Notes: a model not told the origin generated them from the sequence alone. Numbered from the stretch's first letter, positions 28,374 to 45,140 are shown. The stretch: DNA of 64,000 nucleotides from Dimorphilus gyrociliatus (GCA_904063045.1 CAJFCJ010000005.1:3811689-3875688); one strand, 5' to 3'. Numbers and translations are program-made.

Positions 28374-28940
28374 TTCTAATTTTTATAATTTTCCAATAAA
28401 GCGGTAAAATAATCAGCAATCTCAAATGTAAACTGGTAGTAAATAGCCGCAATATTTATATATTCTTTGTTCTTTAAGGAGAAGATAAAGTTCACAAAAT
28501 AAGCTATCTTATATAATATAAAACATTATGACTAAATAAGCATTAATTTAGAACAATATAGTAATATTAATAATTCATAATCTAGAAAGATATATAGTCT
28601 TTTTCCATTTATATAAAAATGGCACGTAAGGTGGTATTAATCATCTTTTCTTAGCATATATATATATAAAGATTTATCTATTACATTTGTACTTTTAATT
28701 GGAAGTTTAAAAAATCTTTAAGTGGTAGGGGTCGCAATATTTTTTTTCACATTTTTTTTAATAATCAGCAGCATGCACAACGGTTTTCTGTCTGAACTAT
28801 GAAAAAAAAACAACTACGAACACTTCACATTTATAAAAAAACACTTCTTTGCTGGTGTTGTTTCTCTTTTTTTTTTCTTTTTACATGAAAAAATGTGTTC
28901 CCCCGTCAGCACCAAAAAAAAAGGAATATGAACTGTTTCT

Positions 28941-31400
28941 TTAACGGCTTAAACTGTGAGATCGTTCCCTTTCCGTGAAAGTTTTCTCCTCAGGAGATAG
29001 CTTGTCGAAGAAAGGATGTTTTAATGCTTCTGATAATTCTAGCCTATGCCTTGGATCGAATTCTAACATTTTTTCAACCATATCGAATAGTTGCCTGTGT
29101 TCGTCACTCTCGTCTAAGATATATCTCTGGAAGAGGGCAGAAAAGAAAACAAATATATTAAACGATTATATAAATTGATAATATAATTAATTATAAGATA
29201 GATTGTAATTATATGATTATTTAAATAAACAGAAAAAAATAATCTATAAAAAGACTTAGTGAGTAACAGAAACAAACGAGGATGAGTTTAGGTAAAAACC
29301 AGTAGTCCTATTTACATACCCTAAGAGGTTTACACGTACTTCTTACAAACATTTCGGACGAATTACTTCCTTCCCAGATTAATTTTTCATTGTTAAAATA
29401 TCGCCCTTTCCTGTAAATTGAGTGGGTTAGAAGGTTTAAACGGGTTAGAAAAAAGTTTAGTCAACAGCAAAGTCAGAAAAAAATATAGAGTCAAAGTATG
29501 GAGAATTAAATAAAAAACATTATAAAACACAATAAAAGAGTCAGTAATAAGGATTTTAAAACGGAAATAGTATAAAAAGAAATATCGCCGTAAACACAGC
29601 AAAATAATTCCAGATTTTTTTTTTTATTAAAAAAAAAATTCCTCGTTTTTCTCTCTGACTTACATGTATAGGTTTACACATTTCCCTAACGTAGCGACCC
29701 GCCGAAGTTTGAGGGTCCCATTCTAGTCGACCGTGCCAGAAGTAGCCGGTTCTATAGTAATAACTCTGGATAATATCTCTTCATCTTTGTATATATATAT
29801 ATTTTTTTTGGTCTTTTAACCCCCCCACCCCTTCTCCCTTTTTCTGTAAATCCTTCCCTCCCATAACTATGTTTTTTTCCCATTACCCTTTTGGGAGAGT
29901 TTTATCCCTTTATACTTGATGAGGGAGGACAATTGTTGTTGAGATTGATTGAATATAATTGATATATTGTTTTTTTTTGTATAAATGACTCACATAATTA
30001 TAAATAGATTTGTTTGTAACAAACTTACTTTGTCTTTCTAGCCATTCTATACGGAATAGTACCCAGAATTCTCTCCATCATAGCCAAATGTTCCCTGTTA
30101 TCGTGAGTTTGAAAGAGTGTGTAACCAGTATAGAATTCAAACATAATGCAACCAATACTCCAAACGTCGCAGGGTTGAGACCAACCAAGCTCCAGAATTA
30201 CTTCTGGTGCTCTATAGTGTCTTGTAGATACAATCGTACTGTGATGCTCATCATCGAAAGTCGCTGAGCCGAAGTCAATTAGTCTTATATTAGTTTTCTT
30301 TACCCGCTTATAAGCTTTTTTCTTTTTCTCATTAAAAATTACGTCAAAATCGGATGAAACGAATAAAATATTTTCGGGTTTTAAATCAGTATGGGTCAGG
30401 TTATTTTCGTGCAGAAAAGCAACGGCCGAACATAGTTGATAAGCCATATGTCGAACTTGATAAAGAGGGTACGGGGCGTAGTTATTATTCTTTAAGAAAT
30501 CGAACACGCTTAGGCCTAGCACCTCAAAAGCTATGCACGTGTGACCGTGATAGTCGAAGAAATCATCCATTCCTACACAAAGACTGTGATGGAAAGAAAA
30601 AAAAAAACAAATCTTTATATGATTAAGTGATGACCTTGGTGTGCAATTTTTTCTCTCTCATTTTTAATTAAAAGCATACATTTAAGAAAAGCTACAGAAG
30701 AGGATATACAGTATAGATAAATAAATATATATATATACTTAGCGACGCTCTACTGCCCTACTAGGGTTTAAGGTCTAATTGAATAAGTATAAATTATATA
30801 AATTGTGCATTATTTCTCTATTTGCTCTCCCTCTCTCTCTTTCTGCACTTTCTCCCTTCCTATAGCCTTTATATGAGAAAGAGAATAACTTGATGCATGC
30901 TAATAAAAAAAGAGGTGAGACTATGCAGTAAAAAAGAAGGGTATATTCTTCCTGTACCGGCCACTAACCCTTGTAACCTCTAGCTGAAAGATGCGTCACG
31001 TGACAGTTACAAAAATAGCAAAAGGGGTTATCGAGAAACAAAAAAGAAGATTTGTTTTTTACTTACTTTTTTCCTCCTCCTTTCCATGTATTAATTGATT
31101 TAAGAACGTTAATTTCCAATTTGGCGGCTTCTCTATATTTATCAACATTCTTAATTATTTTTAAGGCTATAACTTCATTATTATTTCTAGTATCCCGGCA
31201 TTCCGCAACTTTACCAAATGTTCCTTCTCCCAGGGTTCGTAAAATTTCATCTAAGAGAAAGATTAATAGGAAAATATTATATATTGAATATTTTGAAAGT
31301 GGACTTATAAATAATTATTACATCTTGATCTTATTTTATCTCCTATAGAGTATTTTAAATGTCCATCTTCATCGTCGACAATAGATGGAGCTCTTGAATT
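28941..31400 (-). CDS. CLK: CLK/Doa (LAMMER) dual-specificity kinase, catalytic exons
   Basis: Exons 31400-31322 ([10 protein letters not shown]), 31250-31067 ([15 protein letters not shown]), 30583-30029 ([24 protein letters not shown]), alternative 29751-29664 or 29410-29320, 29126-28941 (ends ERSHSLSR*). The first exon is uncertain. Confidence 0.95.
29320..29410 (-). CDS. CLK: CLK alternative exon B ([30 protein letters not shown]), diverged duplicate
   Basis: ttacag|G...AGG|gtatgt; 91 nt; same phases as exon A; keeps YF, L.W, (Y/F)VR and CKP. Confidence 0.8.
29664..29751 (-). CDS. CLK: CLK alternative exon A ([29 protein letters not shown]), canonical type
   Basis: tatag|A...CAT|gtaagt; 88 nt; phase 2 in, phase 0 out; closely matches vertebrate CLK2 [26 protein letters not shown]. 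Confidence 0.9.
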
Positions 31401-32187
31401 CTGTTTTGAATATATAATTGATATACTGAACATGTGTGTATAAAACACAAAATTATCTATATATATATATATATATATAACACTTTAATAAATAACATAT
31501 ATTTAAATGCTTTTTTCAAAATTTTCTCTCTTATTTACCTTTATACTTTCGAATAAACAGTCGAAAAGTAAGATTTTTTTAACGAACATTTTAGAAAAAA
31601 GAACAGAACATGACGTTACGCTACGTTCGATTATTTCAGAATGGTGTTAACTAGTTTTCCGGTGTTTTCCCAATACGTTCTTATTAACAATCGTTGCAAG
31701 GAATTCCCCAGTATGGTGCAAGGTTCAAACATACTGATAATATGGTATTCTGTTCACATTTTCAAAAACTTTTTGACGATTTCAAACGTGAGATTTTTAT
31801 TGAATAAGGGTAAAAGTATAAGACAGGTAGGAGAAGAAAGTGGAGGAATAAATGCAATCAATTCAAGAGATCTGCGGGATGCTTAAGAAGATTGGGTTAG
31901 CAAGGAATGAATCAAAAGTTCCGCCTATAATTAGGTTTTTTTTGCTTTTTTTTGCTTTTTCTAGCTAGGCCTATATTACTAAGTTAGATATAAATTTACT
32001 GACTCCCTCTCTCATTTACTAACCCATTCTCTATTTATTCCTCTCTCTCTCTCTCTCTCTTTTAAAAAGCTGTATGCATACATATATAAACATACAGACG
32101 CCGACACATACACACATATGCATAAGCATATATACAGTATATACAGTATATAGTTATATTCTATTTCTATCTATCTATCTATCTATT

Positions 32188-32228
<41 letters not shown>

Positions 32229-32606
32229 CATTCTGTTTCATGTTGCCCTCATCTTTTAATCTCCTCACTCTATAAAAATCAAGTAAACATTAAAAGTGAT
32301 ATTTAACATGGTGGAAATCTGAATATTTGACATCTCGGATTCAAGCGTTTCCACGCGGGGGCGCTCTTGGTAAAAAATAGAATCAGAAATTCGGGAATAG
32401 ATTGAAAAATCGATAACGCTCTATCTATGGTAGCGCTGTCTGTTGCTGCGTCGATCCTGATGTCAAATTATTGATAATTTTTTAAATACATGATTAATGT
32501 TTGTAGGACTACAGTTATTAGTTATATTATTGATCATACGTTTAGAGTAAAATCTATATTGGGGATTTTTAACTAAGAGGAAGCGTGATTATATAAAAAT
32601 GGAAAC

Positions 32607-32711: not shown

Positions 32712-32841
32712 TCTTTACCAAGTTCCGGATAGAGTAAGCAGGCACGCAGAGGTTTGCGGCGGACAAAAATAACTACATTACCATTTCGCCAGCTACCGCA
32801 AAGTACACTGCATTATGCAGCCTGGTACCCTTCTAGTTTTC

Positions 32842-33062: not shown

Positions 33063-33095
<33 letters not shown>

Positions 33096-33561
33096 AGAAA
33101 GAAAAGAAAGAAATAAATAAAAGAATAAAGGAACAAAGAAAAAAAAGCACCAAATAAGAAAATGATATAAAACGTTATATACTAATATGTATATATATAT
33201 ACCGTATTAGTATATTTATACACATATATACTTATGCATAGATGCATTTTTATGAGTAGATGAAAGTATACTATAAATGATATACTTCAATCATTGTTTG
33301 CTTACTAATAAATAGAAAATATGATATAAATATACTACGTACTACATATGTATAATTTCAATAAAAAGTATTAATAGGTATAATTAAGATAGTTAATTTT
33401 ACAATTTATTATAATAGACTGTGTAAAATAGAGAATTTTTTCATTGTTTTGACTAAATAGCACACTTTTTTAGTTTTATTTTTTTAATCATGTTAATATT
33501 ATTAATTCTTCTTCTCTTTCTTTTATTTTCTTGTAGTTTCTTGTATAACAAACTCTTTGAT

Positions 33562-36500
33562 TTATAGTCCAACGTTTTGTAGAAATATTGGATCTACAAA
33601 GGCTAGCTTTGCAGCTAAAAATGAGTGTAAGCAGAATATAATTGCAAACATTTTTGTACTCTCAATCTTTCTGGTTTCGATCATCCCATTTTCATTTGTA
33701 AAATTCATCATTAGTGCACTCTTTCCGTCATCTCGGGAACTTTTCAATTGAGAGAACTGATAGGCCCATTCGTTGTTCTAGTAAGAAAAACAAAAATAGA
33801 AATAGAGAGAGAGAGAGAGAGAGAGAATAAGATGATAAGATCAGAGAGAAAGAAAAACGTAATTTTCTCTACCTTTGTATCATTATCATAGAGTGCTATA
33901 CCACCATCCAAATCCAGGGTTAAACCGCAAAGTCTATCATTCCACGAGCACCCGTAAGTAATATTCTGTACGACAACATTAATAATCTTAATAAAACGAT
34001 ATAAGACCTTTGCCATCCTTATTTTATTATAGGATACGAGTTTTTACTTTATTAACCTGTATTGTTGTCACCGCTGTAGCATTGGCGCAATGCCAGGCTT
34101 TTTCCAGTTTTAGCAGTTGTTGTCGAGAATCGACGCTCATGTAACATTTCTGAACCGTTTGAGTTACTTTATTACATTTAGCGTTTTCTATTATACAACA
34201 ATATTTTCTGTCGTCCGCACACTCGGATTGCTGAAATGTATGTACATAAAAATATACTATAGATGGCGCCACAAGTCAATTATTTAAATTAAGCATCATT
34301 AACGATGGGAGGAAGAAGGGGGAAGGGGGGGGGGTTGAGAAGAAGTAAATTAGTAATTTTTTCAACTAGAAATTACCTTTAGAATTCTAAAAACGGATTC
34401 GTATATTTTGAATGTTTTTTCTGGAACTTCCCAATCATCCCGACTTGCCTAGATTTAGGGAAAAATAGAACAAGAAAATTAAATGAATTAGTTTGGTTTT
34501 GATTGGACCAAAAGCTTAATTCTCTTTTACCGGAGGCTGTTCGAAAAGATAAACATCCATTCCGCATAAACAGAGGAAAGTCGGTGCCCAAGCAACATTA
34601 GTTATCTTCTCCTTAACCCAACTCATAAACATGACCTTTTAAAAAATTTATAAGGTTGATGTAGGAGTAGCTCATTTTCAATCAATAAATAATATATCAT
34701 AAAATTTTATAAAGTATATATATATATATATATATTAGTATATCTATATATGAAGAATGAAAAATAAACCTGCTTGGAGGGATATATTGAGTTATTAAAC
34801 TCTTTCATCCGTTTATAATTCAAGGCACTAATATTATTAAATATATCGTTAAACCATTCCGAACACGAGAAGGCGTTTTCGCACATAATTAGACCGCTGT
34901 GTATTGAATCGTTTGCACTTTGAATTTGGAAGCTTGTAGAACCTTTTTCTCCTTCTGATAAACTTATATGAGCGAATAATAATGGTATGGTTGTAGACAA
35001 TTTCCATTCCTTCTTTATTGGGGCCAACGGTACGTGCTGGTCGTCTATCTGTACAGAAGAAAATTGATCGACGCCCCCGTAAAAAGCGAATCTTTTGCAT
35101 TTGTAGAATGGGAAAAAAAGTGCAAGGGAAAATTGGGTATAAAAAAAACTGGGTACCAACTTCTATATTGTCATTTTCGATCTCCAATTGCTTCCCCATG
35201 CCAGCTATTTGAGTAAAAACAGAAAAAGAAGGAAATTATTAAGGAACTGTATTACACATAAAATATAGATATTCGAAAGAATGTATTATTAAGAATATTT
35301 ATTAAATTCAAGATGCTTTAGAGGGGAAACGGGCTATGAGAAAAAGCTCTAGTCTTAAAACGAAAAGACTAGATAAAGGATCATTACCATTATCGTTCTC
35401 TCGATCTTGTTGGCCTAGGAATAGTGAGGCTGGACGAAAGTATTTAACGACTAGAGTAACATCGTTGCCGGCGTGCTTTAGGCACTGTACGGCTTCGTCA
35501 TGACGCAATTTTGTAACATTCGCCCCGTTTACAGATAGAATAGCGTCTCCAACGTATAAAGATCTTGTCCTATCCGCTGCTTGGCCCTTAAATATCCGAG
35601 AGATGAGTATCGGTAGGTTATGTTCGTGTCCGCCTATTTTGATAATAAATTAAGCCTAATTAAACGTATGAGACTAATTTTTTTTCGTTAAACAAATAAA
35701 TTACCCTTAACGCTAATGCCCAAACCACCACCTCCTCTGTGAACGATAACTGTACGTTCCTGTTGTAAACAATTCTGTATTATATTTAATTATTCAAAAC
35801 GAGAAATGTCTTTGGCAGATAGATACAGACAGCTAAGAGTGAGACAGAGAAATCTAAGCGACGCTCGTATAAATAAGGCGAACGGGCCGTCTAATCGAAC
35901 CAAATCGGGTTTCATCGAATTCGGGCGATAGATATTGGATTTGCAAACAAAACTCGGCAAAGAGGTGCTCGAATTAGTTGCGATTCGACTAGGAAAGTTT
36001 GTCGGAAAACGCCCCCCTTCTCGATATCTTTTTCGCTTAGATTTTTCCTATCTTCATTCCTTTGGCCTATTTTTTTTTTTGACTTCTCTCCTTTTAAATT
36101 ATCCCAACCAAATTGAAATTTGAGTAGGATAAAAGGTAATTGGAGATAGTAACGATAGGGACCGCCAGTAGGGGCGGAAATATCTATTTATCTATGAACA
36201 TAAGAAATAGTAGAGACAAAAAAGGAGAAAAACACTTGGGAAATCCGATATAGACTCGCCTACTCCCAAGCAATCACAGTTCTATTGATATTCAATTCAA
36301 CTACAACTCGTTCATTTTAGCTCATCCTGAATAGACAAATCAATCAATATCGATTCGGACCGCCACTCACTTTCGATAATAGAGATGAGTCGATATCGTT
36401 TGGCTCCACGCAAACTAATTCTTCCCTGTGCAATTCCACTATGTCCCTACCCAGTCGTAACTTCATAGGCATTGCATTCGAATCCGTCTCTCCTCGAACC

Positions 36501-41600: not shown

Positions 41601-43589
41601 CAATAAGGGAATTTGTATTAAAGATACTAGGGAACAAAGAGGTTATAGATGTGCCTGCGAACAAGGATATAGGGGAATTGATTGTACAATTCCAGATCCT
41701 TGCGTTTCTAGACCTTGCGGTTCCCGAGGCGCTTGCATTTTGACTGAAGGAAATAATTTTAGATGTGATTGTTATAATGGTTATAGCGGTGAATTTTGCG
41801 AAAATACAAGAGGGCCTTGCGATAATTCCCCCTGCGGCCAAAATGGACAATGTAGACCTATGGGTTCAAACTATGAATGCGTTTGCATAAATGGTTATAC
41901 AGGAACTAATTGCCAAAATTCCCCTTGTATGTCAAATCCGTGTTCTTCAACTGCAAGGTGCGAACTCGATTCGTCAAATAGCTCAGGTTTCAAATGCGTT
42001 TGTAGTCCTGGATATTCCGGTGATCGGTGTACAATTTTTGAGTCATGTCCTGCTGGCTTTTGTAAAAATGGAGGTACGTGCTTTAGATTAGCGGATGGAA
42101 GTTTCTCGTGTCGATGTCCAATAGGATATTACGAAAATGATTGTTCTACCCCTTCAATGTGTGTTACTTCTCCTTGTCAAAATGGTGGAACGTGTTCAGG
42201 AGGAGTAAATTACAGAGTTTGCTACTGTACATCAGGTTTTTCAGGAAATTCTTGCGAAAAAGTTGCTTCTCCTTGTAATCCGAATCCATGCCAAGGAAAT
42301 GGAACTTGCATAAGTCAGAATCCTCATTCGTACCAATGTAAATGTCCTCCCAATCGCTCAGGAGAACATTGTGAGAATCGGAAGAATTACTGTGACAGTT
42401 CTCCTTGTTTCAAAGGCAACTGTAATAATATGGGAAGTGGCTATACATGCACCTGTTGGGATGGTTACACTGGAAAAAACTGTGATACTCCACCAACTGC
42501 ATGCATAATTAATCCTTGTAAAAACGGTGGCACTTGTAGAACTAGTGATATATTAAGAGCTGATGGTCAAGCTTTATATGAATGCGACTGTTCCAGCGGT
42601 TACAGTGGAAGAACTTGTGAAATTGAAGGTTAATAGTCTATTTTATATCAATTTTTTTAAAGTTTAATTCCATTACAGAGAACGAGGGCCCATCTTGTGA
42701 ATCAATCAAATGTCTCAATAGTGGTGTTTGCGTATTAATGAATGAAGAGCCTACTTGTATCTGTAAAGTAGGATATGGAGGAGAGTACTGCGAAGAGCGA
42801 GGTATATATCTTCAAGTGTTTTAATGTCAAGTTTAATCAAAAATTGAACATTTGCTTACGACAGTCGAGGAAAGTGAGTGTAAGAGTAATCCGTGTCAGA
42901 ATAATGGAATATGCTACGTGGAAGGTGGTGTATCGAAATGTGATTGTCCCCTTGGATGGGGAGGAGATCATTGTAACATTCGTAAGTTTTCTCTAATATT
43001 GAGTAAATATTTTCAACGTAAGGATTAACTTTCTCTGATAGCTTGCGGTGCCTGCCCTGTAAGTGGAAAAGTTATTATTCCGGGATCATTATACAAGCCG
43101 TGTAAAGCAAAGAAGTTGGAAAACGAAGAAATGGCTTCTTATAGCGGGCATTATGGTTATGGAGGATTCCATAAATGTTGGTGGAACTGGTGGAATAAGC
43201 CAAAACCCAAGGAAGATCCTAAAGACTTTACCTGTTGCGAAGGATCAAAATTAATAAAAACGAGTAACGGTAGATTTAAATGCGCTGTAGAAGGCTGGGG
43301 TACATGGGAAAAGTGTCCAAGTTGCGGGAATTGCCAGAAAGTATCAAGAAGCAAATACGCAGTTCGTAAATGCGACAGAAATTACCTGAGGAAATACTGC
43401 AATTACAGAAGAAACGATTCAGTAGCTTATCTAGCCGTGACATCGTGTCAATCAAAATCTTGCAGCAACAAACCATGCAATTGCGCCTACTATAACTATT
43501 ACTGTTCGAAATGTAAATATGGATGTAGATTGAACAGCTCCAAAACCCAGTGTATGCCAGGAAACATAGCTGATAGATGGTATAAATGA
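38646..43589 (+). CDS. Secreted astacin (M12A) metalloprotease with EGF, CUB, 15 tandem EGF repeats and a C-terminal TSP1-like Cys-rich domain
   Basis: Exons 38646-38720 (signal peptide), 38891-39059 (furin site RRKR|AA), 39302-39510, 39724-39927 ([23 protein letters not shown] Met-turn), 39999-40128, 40205-40333, 40389-40594 (CUB), 40655-40689, 40748-40989, 41064-41306, 41397-41510, 41576-42628, 42679-42801, 42865-42981, 43042-43589; all GT-AG and in phase. Confidence 0.93.
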
Positions 43590-45140
43590 AAATCATATCA
43601 GCGACCAAAATTTTGATACTTAATCAACAGAAAAAAAAACTTTATCTTTGTTATTATCTTAATTATTCAATATTTTCTTTCTAACAAACACACTGTATTA
43701 ATACTGTATTATCCATTATTTAGAGACAACGTTTGTCTCTGTTTTACACAAAGACAAAAAGATGTTTAATATTAGTTAGCCTAATAAACGTAGATAATCA
43801 ACACCTGCATTAGATAACGATTTTGTTCATATTTTGTAAATATCACATTTTACATATACTATATAAATTTACGCCTGATATGTCACTTCAAGGAGAAGAT
43901 AACAATTCTCACTCTAAAAGAGATTGCTCTGCTAAAAAGATAGTATTAATAGAGGAAAATGAAAGAAAAAAGTATCCTCAGCTCATATCATATATAGCAA
44001 AGATGATATTTTGGTTAAGGATGGAGAACCAATTCGTTGAACTTCTACTACATACGTTTTGGACTTACTAATCAGTAAACACACCAGATTTTAATATTCA
44101 TTGAAAAGGTCTGGAGAGTTCTGGCCAGACTTGTTTATCGCAATAATTAACAATTTAATCTTCTAGGAAGCTAAAAACTGCTTTCTCTGAAGACTGGATT
44201 GAAATTGGCTAAACATTTTTTTATTATCAGAACCAAACAGACTACTTGGGTTTTTTATCAATTAAGAAAAGTAATAATTAAACCACACATGGTATTTCTA
44301 GGAAAGAGTAAGACGGTGTGCAAGGAAATCGTATAAGCTAGATTGTATTAAAAAGTATATAAGAATTATAAGTACGTCTCCTTCCTTTAATAGATTTACT
44401 ATTCATAATAGATGAGTGTCACGTCATCACCTTTTCTATCAAACACTTGAAAGTAAAGTAATAGACGAAAATTTAGAGTTTACATAACCTTTTCCCTACT
44501 TGTATATACTGCATATATACTGTTTATATACTGTATATACGAATTATATCTTTTATAAAGCTACACGTTGATACGACATTCGGCGAAAATAATAAAAAGT
44601 AGGCCTTACATCATGAGAAATAAAAACTTGCGGTAACACGCTTTGTAATCATTAAAAACGAAAGAGCAAAGTTTTCTCTTTATTCATTTATTGGGAAGTC
44701 ATTAAAATTAAGATATAAATATAATGAATTGAATGAAAAATAGTAAAAATGTATACATATTCATATATTCATACATATATATATATATATCTACTGTATA
44801 TATAAAGTATATAGCTTTGGACAGATTAGTTAGTTTCGTATAATTTAAATAAAATCACATATATAATTAATATATACATAAATTATATGTATACAGTCTA
44901 TTTATATATATGTATATATATACTGTATATATATATATTCATAGATTTATAATAAATAGGAAAGCAGCAGGATAAGAATGGAATTTTTTATTATTATTAG
45001 ATTCTTTGCTATAATCAAAATGAGACTAATCTTATCAGGAAGTAAGATAATACTAAATGCAGGCAATGTGTAATTTCTATACCTATGCTATAGTCTTGTA
45101 GAAGATAATACCCTTTCTCTTCACTGTATTACCTAGTTTG

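Follow-up and report, generated by a model that had tools for sequence, protein, structure and literature searches.

A tandem exon pair, very probably mutually exclusive and of early lophotrochozoan origin, in a CLK/LAMMER kinase gene

Exon swaps in CLKs and other kinases

CLK/LAMMER kinases determine how far SR splicing factors are phosphorylated, and how they pick their substrates without a docking groove of the SRPK1 type is debated. For the JNK kinases, Gupta et al. are said to have reported in 1996 that isoforms differ in substrate binding. The genes of JNK1-3 (MAPK8/9/10) carry the exons 6a and 6b and are among the closest parallels: JNKs are likewise CMGC kinases in which a duplicated internal C-lobe exon is swapped to give catalytically intact isoforms, the exclusivity of the two exons depending on U2/U12 intron incompatibility (PMC1874599). 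The JNK pair belongs, however, to another kinase family and affects another segment than the CLK pair considered here. The exons 7A/7B of FYN (FynB/FynT) likewise go back to an ancient tandem duplication and are mutually exclusive, giving isoforms that bind differently (PMC9741552), although in FYN the swap affects the N-lobe and the SH2-kinase linker, unlike in the CLK pair. In the text of the same paper, which deals with tandem-duplicated exon substitution in human genes, CLK has 0 occurrences (PMC9741552).

The alternative splicing known for the CLK/Doa kinases themselves comprises the skipping of CLK1 exon 4 and the alternative N-termini of Doa and in C. elegans (PMC12795684). In these events splicing of the kinase's own message leads to functionally distinct products (PMC12795684), as it may in the case presented here, but the known events truncate the kinase or alter its N-terminus or localisation, and none swaps a part of the kinase domain. 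A phylogenetic and structural survey of CLKs from 2025 names the MAPK-like insert, in which a conserved splice site lies, as a hotspot of divergence (PMC12795684); the term 'mutually exclusive' occurs 0 times in it. Literature searches, CLK reviews included, found no paper describing a mutually exclusive CLK exon.

The first-pass annotation of the window (the whole 64-kb stretch of Dimorphilus gyrociliatus DNA that was analysed) had presented a duplicated CLK exon as a possibly undescribed switch. The exon pair is not peculiar to this gene: loci of annelids, a brachiopod, molluscs and a trematode have it in the same order. The switch may be undescribed in the literature but not in databases, since isoforms that differ only in the segment concerned are annotated in Pomacea canaliculata (A-type, X1, XP_025090454; B-type, X3, XP_025090457), in Octopus vulgaris CLK2 (X5 for A and X4 for B) and in Schistosoma haematobium (CAH8634685 for A and CAH8634699 for B). 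These pairs are orthologues of the pair in the window, with the same exon swapped between the same flanks and with sequences of the A and B types, and in the Pomacea and S. haematobium loci A precedes B in the genome as it does in the window. They are known from automatic annotation, and no publication on them was found. Prior annotation in orthologues is one of the outcomes that the first-pass annotation had itself named as refuting its proposal. With isoforms already in the public annotation of several orthologues, the locus is an undescribed case of a well-known kind of event and not a new kind.

We consider it very likely that the locus holds a mutually exclusive tandem exon pair in a single CLK/LAMMER gene, which stems from one early-lophotrochozoan duplication and yields two full-length kinases. 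In the mechanism proposed, each mRNA would have one of the two exons, A or B, between the exon that encodes the LAMMER motif and the last exon. The products would be two full-length kinases with identical catalytic cores that differ in about 30 residues, equivalent to residues 408-437 of human CLK1. The pair would have arisen once in an early lophotrochozoan, and the B copy would have evolved very fast in the lineage of this worm.

Gene structure and transcripts

The CLK/LAMMER kinase is coded on the minus strand at 28.9-31.4 kb of the window, and the exon duplication reported in it is confirmed as real, the coordinates, phases and peptides of both copies having proved correct on re-reading of the sequence. 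The assignment of the gene to the CLK/LAMMER family was likewise borne out. A constitutive exon at 31067..31250 (minus strand) starts the kinase domain, has a Pkinase match, and is joined to the next exon (31067|30583) in RNA contigs of runs X1 and X4. This next exon, at 30029..30583 (minus strand), is also constitutive and carries the kinase core (Pkinase E 3e-33), including an HTD catalytic loop, a DFG motif and an exact 11-residue LAMMER signature corresponding to helix alphaG; an X4 contig spans 30029-30583 exactly. HTD in place of HRD is characteristic of the catalytic loop of CLKs (Bullock 2009, PMC2667211). The exon ends at 30029 with ...IPYRMARKT followed by 'aa', two bases of a split Lys codon, and with the donor GTAAGT.

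A 277-nt intron (29752..30028, minus strand), in which reading of the sequence shows a stretch rich in purines and, before the A acceptor, only a weak pyrimidine tract, leads to exon A (29664..29751, minus strand). This A-type copy, of a lophotrochozoan-specific kind, is 88 nt long, has the acceptor ..ctatAG and the donor GTAAGT, completes the Lys codon and codes for 29 aa. It is separated by an intron of 253 nt (29411..29663, minus strand), with a pyrimidine tract and two CTAAC motifs resembling branch points directly upstream of B, from exon B (29320..29410, minus strand), a strongly diverged copy of the canonical type that is 91 nt long, has the acceptor ..ttacAG and the donor GTATGT, and also completes the Lys codon, coding for 30 aa. 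A GT..AG intron of 193 nt (29127..29319, minus strand) then precedes the last coding exon (28941..29126, minus strand), which starts in phase 0 and reads from RYILDE... to RERSHSLSR before the stop TAA at 28943-28941.

Both exons have AG/GT ends, are entered in phase 2 and are left in phase 0 onto the last exon. Neither length is a multiple of three, nor is their sum (88 + 91 = 179 nt), and the inclusion of both exons or of neither therefore shifts the frame into an early stop. On translation, the order A+B reads ...CKPIH ERAIF* and the order B+A likewise hits a stop, while the sequence with both exons skipped reads K D I S stop; exon B alone between the flanks gives a full-length ORF. The earlier statement that the form with both exons stops, and that each single-exon isoform keeps the frame and the catalytic exons, thus stands. 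Exclusivity is enforced at least at the level of the reading frame, which is the sole enforcement demonstrable here.

No further copy of the A/B exon was detected by tblastn in the 64-kb window, and no second alternative terminal exon of the mollusc kind in its 18-31 kb section. Neither reading nor tblastn with P0314 and P0214 revealed an Arg/Ser-rich N-terminal exon at 31.4-33.5 kb, a region where low-complexity exons are easily missed and where the 5' end of the gene has no RNA contig. An exon at 31400-31322 (minus strand) could follow a putative first exon of 17 codons with its ATG at 31589 and its donor after 31539, a stretch to which no RNA contig corresponds; such a first exon (31539-31589) would leave the CLK almost without an N-terminal domain.

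RNA contigs from the runs X1, X2 and X4 were compared with the window over 28850-31350. X1 is a cDNA metatranscriptome labelled as a coral metagenome, and contains a contig of 296 nt that is almost identical to the window. In this contig, 29320 is joined to 29126 with the 193 nt between them skipped at GT..AG ends, as the first-pass annotation had predicted, and there are zero mismatches over 44 nt of exon B. The RNA is evidently from the same species as the window, and in it exon B is thus spliced onto the last exon; this is the sole junction of the pair that is seen directly in this species.

X4 comes from a relative, of another strain, whose large exon differs from that of the window at 24/555 nt (coding sequence about 96% identical), and the presence of a contig from which the 30583|31067 intron has been removed identifies it as RNA. 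Its record 9 holds exon A (29664-29751) at a k-mer depth of 51.8 and its record 8 holds exon B (29320-29410) at 30.1, and both records have the same 30-nt overhangs on both sides, which translate as the IPYRMARKT end and the start of the last exon. The constitutive exon has a depth of 70.8, roughly the sum of A and B, contig depths being rough measures. A pair of mutually exclusive exons gives rise to a bubble of this form in a de Bruijn assembly. No contig with both exons or with neither was seen in the RNA runs, although contigs cannot prove absence. Between the window and X4, exon A differs at 2/88 nt and exon B at 2/91, and the differences listed, at 29694 in A and at 29403 in B, are synonymous. 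The records of X4 and the X1 joint, together with reciprocal tblastn, uphold the view that A and B are paralogous exons used singly. The 51 nt upstream of B (29411-29461) also occur on a 142-nt contig of a relative in X2, with 5 differences, one of those listed being intronic, and another intron stretch, 29887-30034, has 15 differences.

Position in the kinase fold and distribution among animals

Peptides A and B are each other's only significant tblastn match in the 64-kb window (E 2.5e-4 and 6e-4, the next match having an E of at least 0.26). Against the PDB, exon A matched CLK1-4 at E 7e-9 (19 CLK sequences), in addition to two chance matches to ribosomal protein S2 at E 1.6; exon B reached E 0.04, and all 19 of its matches were CLKs, aligned over the same residues as exon A. 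Residues 3-28 of A correspond to CLK1 411-436 and residues 1-30 of B to CLK1 408-437. In CLK1, the LAMMER motif (386-396) lies within helix alphaG and is followed by the MAPK-like insertion (400-432), in which a two-strand beta-sheet (409-418) replaces the second helix (Bullock et al. 2009, PMC2667211). The strictly conserved Trp419 packs on an Ala in the LAMMER helix. Helix alphaH (424-432), which is specific to CLKs, buries alphaG and lies over the groove in which SR proteins dock on SRPK1; alphaH and the MAPK-like insert together bury this groove and the LAMMER helix (PMC2667211). Aligned onto this numbering, the swapped exon comprises the beta-sheet of the MAPK insert, Trp419 and alphaH, and the equivalent of Trp419 is kept in both exon A and exon B. 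The location in the MAPK-like insertion that had been given before is therefore right, and can be narrowed to the second half of the insertion with alphaH (PDB mapping; PMC2667211).

Orthologues were sought by a profile-free protein search with the 184-aa core exon against 1.84 billion representative proteins and by a word search for which a scallop CLK was the query; among the best 120 matches of the latter, the annotated protein of the window itself was absent. The CLKs retrieved have two kinds of sequence after '...RM.KK[ST]K'. A-type exons are 29 aa long, start with x-[GND]-x-F-[WY]-HGRL-[DE]-WD and end in Tyr in 12/15 cases. B-type exons are 30-31 aa long, start with [KR]x[KR]YF, end in Lys or Arg and resemble the CLKs of vertebrates, arthropods and rotifers. 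Both types were located in the loci of S. haematobium (L001, A at 32220-32309 and B at 32745-32838), Pomacea (L003, 21018-21107 and 21929-22018), Mizuhopecten (L004, 64357-64443 and 65367-65456), the annelid Owenia fusiformis (L005, about 43318-43404 and 43751-43840) and the brachiopod Lingula (L006, about 41706-41792 and 42371-42460). In these and in the window, six loci altogether, A lies upstream of B, and entry in a split codon and exit in phase 0 are identical. An A-type isoform of the nemertean Lineus is also in the database. Only one exon, of the canonical type, is present in the rotifer Brachionus (L007) and in the spider Nephila (L008), with no second copy in the flanking introns.

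The bivalves Mizuhopecten and Ruditapes add a second alternative pair, of terminal exons, which the window lacks. In Mizuhopecten, two alternative terminal exons follow the A/B pair (L004:70372-70551 and 76889-77074); one type in bivalves reads 'HYLRDKG...' and the other is the canonical 'RYLRDPEN...RERSHSLSR' type, the only one in the window. The Ruditapes isoforms X4 (A-type) and X1 (B-type) differ both in the segment discussed here and in the terminal exon, and in the Ruditapes isoforms P0213/P0220, the canonical terminal exon goes with A and the HYL type with B. The CLK exon TGYFGRNGKLMWDKRTHPAKYVAKHCKPLH of P0085/P0181, from Logan assemblies, has an A-like start and the B-like features L-M-W and AKYV, which are also found in trematode B exons.

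Origin, divergence and control of the exon pair

In a maximum-likelihood tree of 42 exon peptides, all 15 A-type exons fell into one clade with 97/97 support, and no A-type exon grouped with the B of its own species; the rest of the tree is poorly resolved because the alignment has only 30 columns. Taken together with the common order and phases, the A clade argues for one duplication that preceded the split of annelids, brachiopods, nemerteans, molluscs and flatworms. As the pair is absent from the rotifer and the spider, either the event belongs to the lophotrochozoan stem or both of these lineages have lost the pair. On the sequences compared, the duplication probably occurred in the stem, and the simplest reading would take exon A as the derived, highly conserved copy and exon B as the retained canonical one. 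These phyla diverged in the Cambrian or earlier, and by their accepted divergence times the age of the pair would exceed 500 million years. It has to be weighed whether the pairs of different phyla could instead be independent duplications of the same exon, an explanation by convergence that we consider highly improbable. Animal genes have often undergone tandem exon duplication independently (PMC9741552), and the identity of A and B within a species varies, from 22/29 in Pomacea through 19/29 in Owenia and Octopus and 12/29 in Schistosoma to 10/29 in the window, where the diverged B stands apart from the better matched copies of Pomacea and Octopus. Convergence would, however, have to account for the clustering of 15/15 A-type exons away from the B exons of their own species, for the length of 29 aa and the HGRL start common to A exons, for the length of 30-31 aa and the [KR]x[KR]YF start common to B exons, and for an A-before-B order and intron phases that are identical in six loci.

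The divergence of exon B in this worm bears on a further explanation, in which B is a decaying duplicate whose inclusion is noise or an NMD-type event, so that A alone would make a working kinase here. The branch of B is by far the longest in the exon tree (1.28 vs a median of 0.075), its match to the CLKs in the PDB is weak (E 0.04), and it alters six near-invariant positions (G415E, D418I, D420E, G426E, R427M and Y428F in CLK1 numbering). Its alphaH reads SSEMFVRST vs SAGRYVREM. The SAGRY stretch had been called near-invariant, which agrees with the 41 other exon copies (G426 in 40/41, R427 in 37/41 and Y428 in 41/41); the basic-to-acidic swap described for it does concern residues that are changed, but really consists of two neighbouring changes, G426E and R427M. 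On the other hand, B retains the invariant core residues L417, W419 and C433, plus F412, V429 and P435, which are invariant or nearly so. It is open in the sole workable frame, gives a full-length ORF when used alone, and has intact AG/GT sites and good branch-point motifs. In X4 it is present at a depth of 30 vs 52 for A, joined to the same flanks, and it has changed as little as A relative to this relative (2/91 vs 2/88 nt, with the listed change synonymous); the pair as such is retained in five phyla. An exon that is open, spliced, substantial in the RNA of a relative and conserved towards it like A argues against decay, which we regard as unlikely, if somewhat less so than convergence. Relaxed constraint on exon B could nevertheless contribute to its divergence. 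A mutually exclusive pair of single origin accordingly remains the preferred explanation.

Since the catalytic core is the same in both, the isoforms of such a pair should differ in the surface that the hairpin and alphaH form over the LAMMER helix, and A and B would expose different surfaces around alphaH and the beta-hairpin. We infer from this placement a difference in their stability or regulation or in the way they handle partners or substrates. That the difference matters is argued by the conservation of the pairs across at least five phyla. A more far-reaching and tentative proposal, which we hold to be possible but rather less than probable, is that A and B form an ancient (>500 million years) regulated toggle of alphaH and the hairpin, with B remodelled here for lineage-specific partners or substrates. 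One master splicing kinase would then have two docking or partner surfaces across Lophotrochozoa, and the GRY-to-EMF change in alphaH would represent the remodelling of the B surface in this worm. As CLKs control splice-site choice, the A/B switch could also be part of a loop that feeds back on its own splicing. Natural isoform pairs that are identical save for the alphaH/hairpin element would allow the role of alphaH and the hairpin to be tested cleanly. The species whose A and B forms could be expressed include Schistosoma, in which CLK is a candidate drug target.

Several mechanisms known to make exons exclusive were considered beyond the reading frame. The donors GTAAGT, GTAAGT and GTATGT belong to ordinary GT-AG introns, and U2/U12 incompatibility of the JNK type is ruled out, there being no U12-type donor among the three introns. 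Steric hindrance is also ruled out, the A-B intron of 253 nt not being too short. Competing RNA pairing between introns, of the Dscam / 14-3-3 type, was not indicated, as shuffling matched the duplex energies of all intron pairs (in the comparisons between the three introns, mononucleotide shuffles were as low as the best energies in 41, 14 and 45 of 60). A scan for inverted repeats returned an unremarkable pair of 24 nt and 79% (I3), between 29663-29640, after the A donor, and 29282-29259, after B. Candidate splicing-control elements are a purine-rich tract (..gggagaaggggtggggggg..) at about 29830-29900 (minus strand), upstream of exon A in the intron, and the CTAAC motifs before exon B within 29411-29461 (minus strand). 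A weak tract for A behind a purine-rich intron, as opposed to the CTAAC motifs and better tract of B, would allow a regulated choice.

The upstream neighbour of the CLK gene, at about 33565-35650 (minus strand), has a PDZ-like ORF, looks syntrophin-like and stops about 2 kb short of the CLK gene. Between the two genes lie (GA)n/(CT)n microsatellites, at 32195-32250 and 33070-33100.
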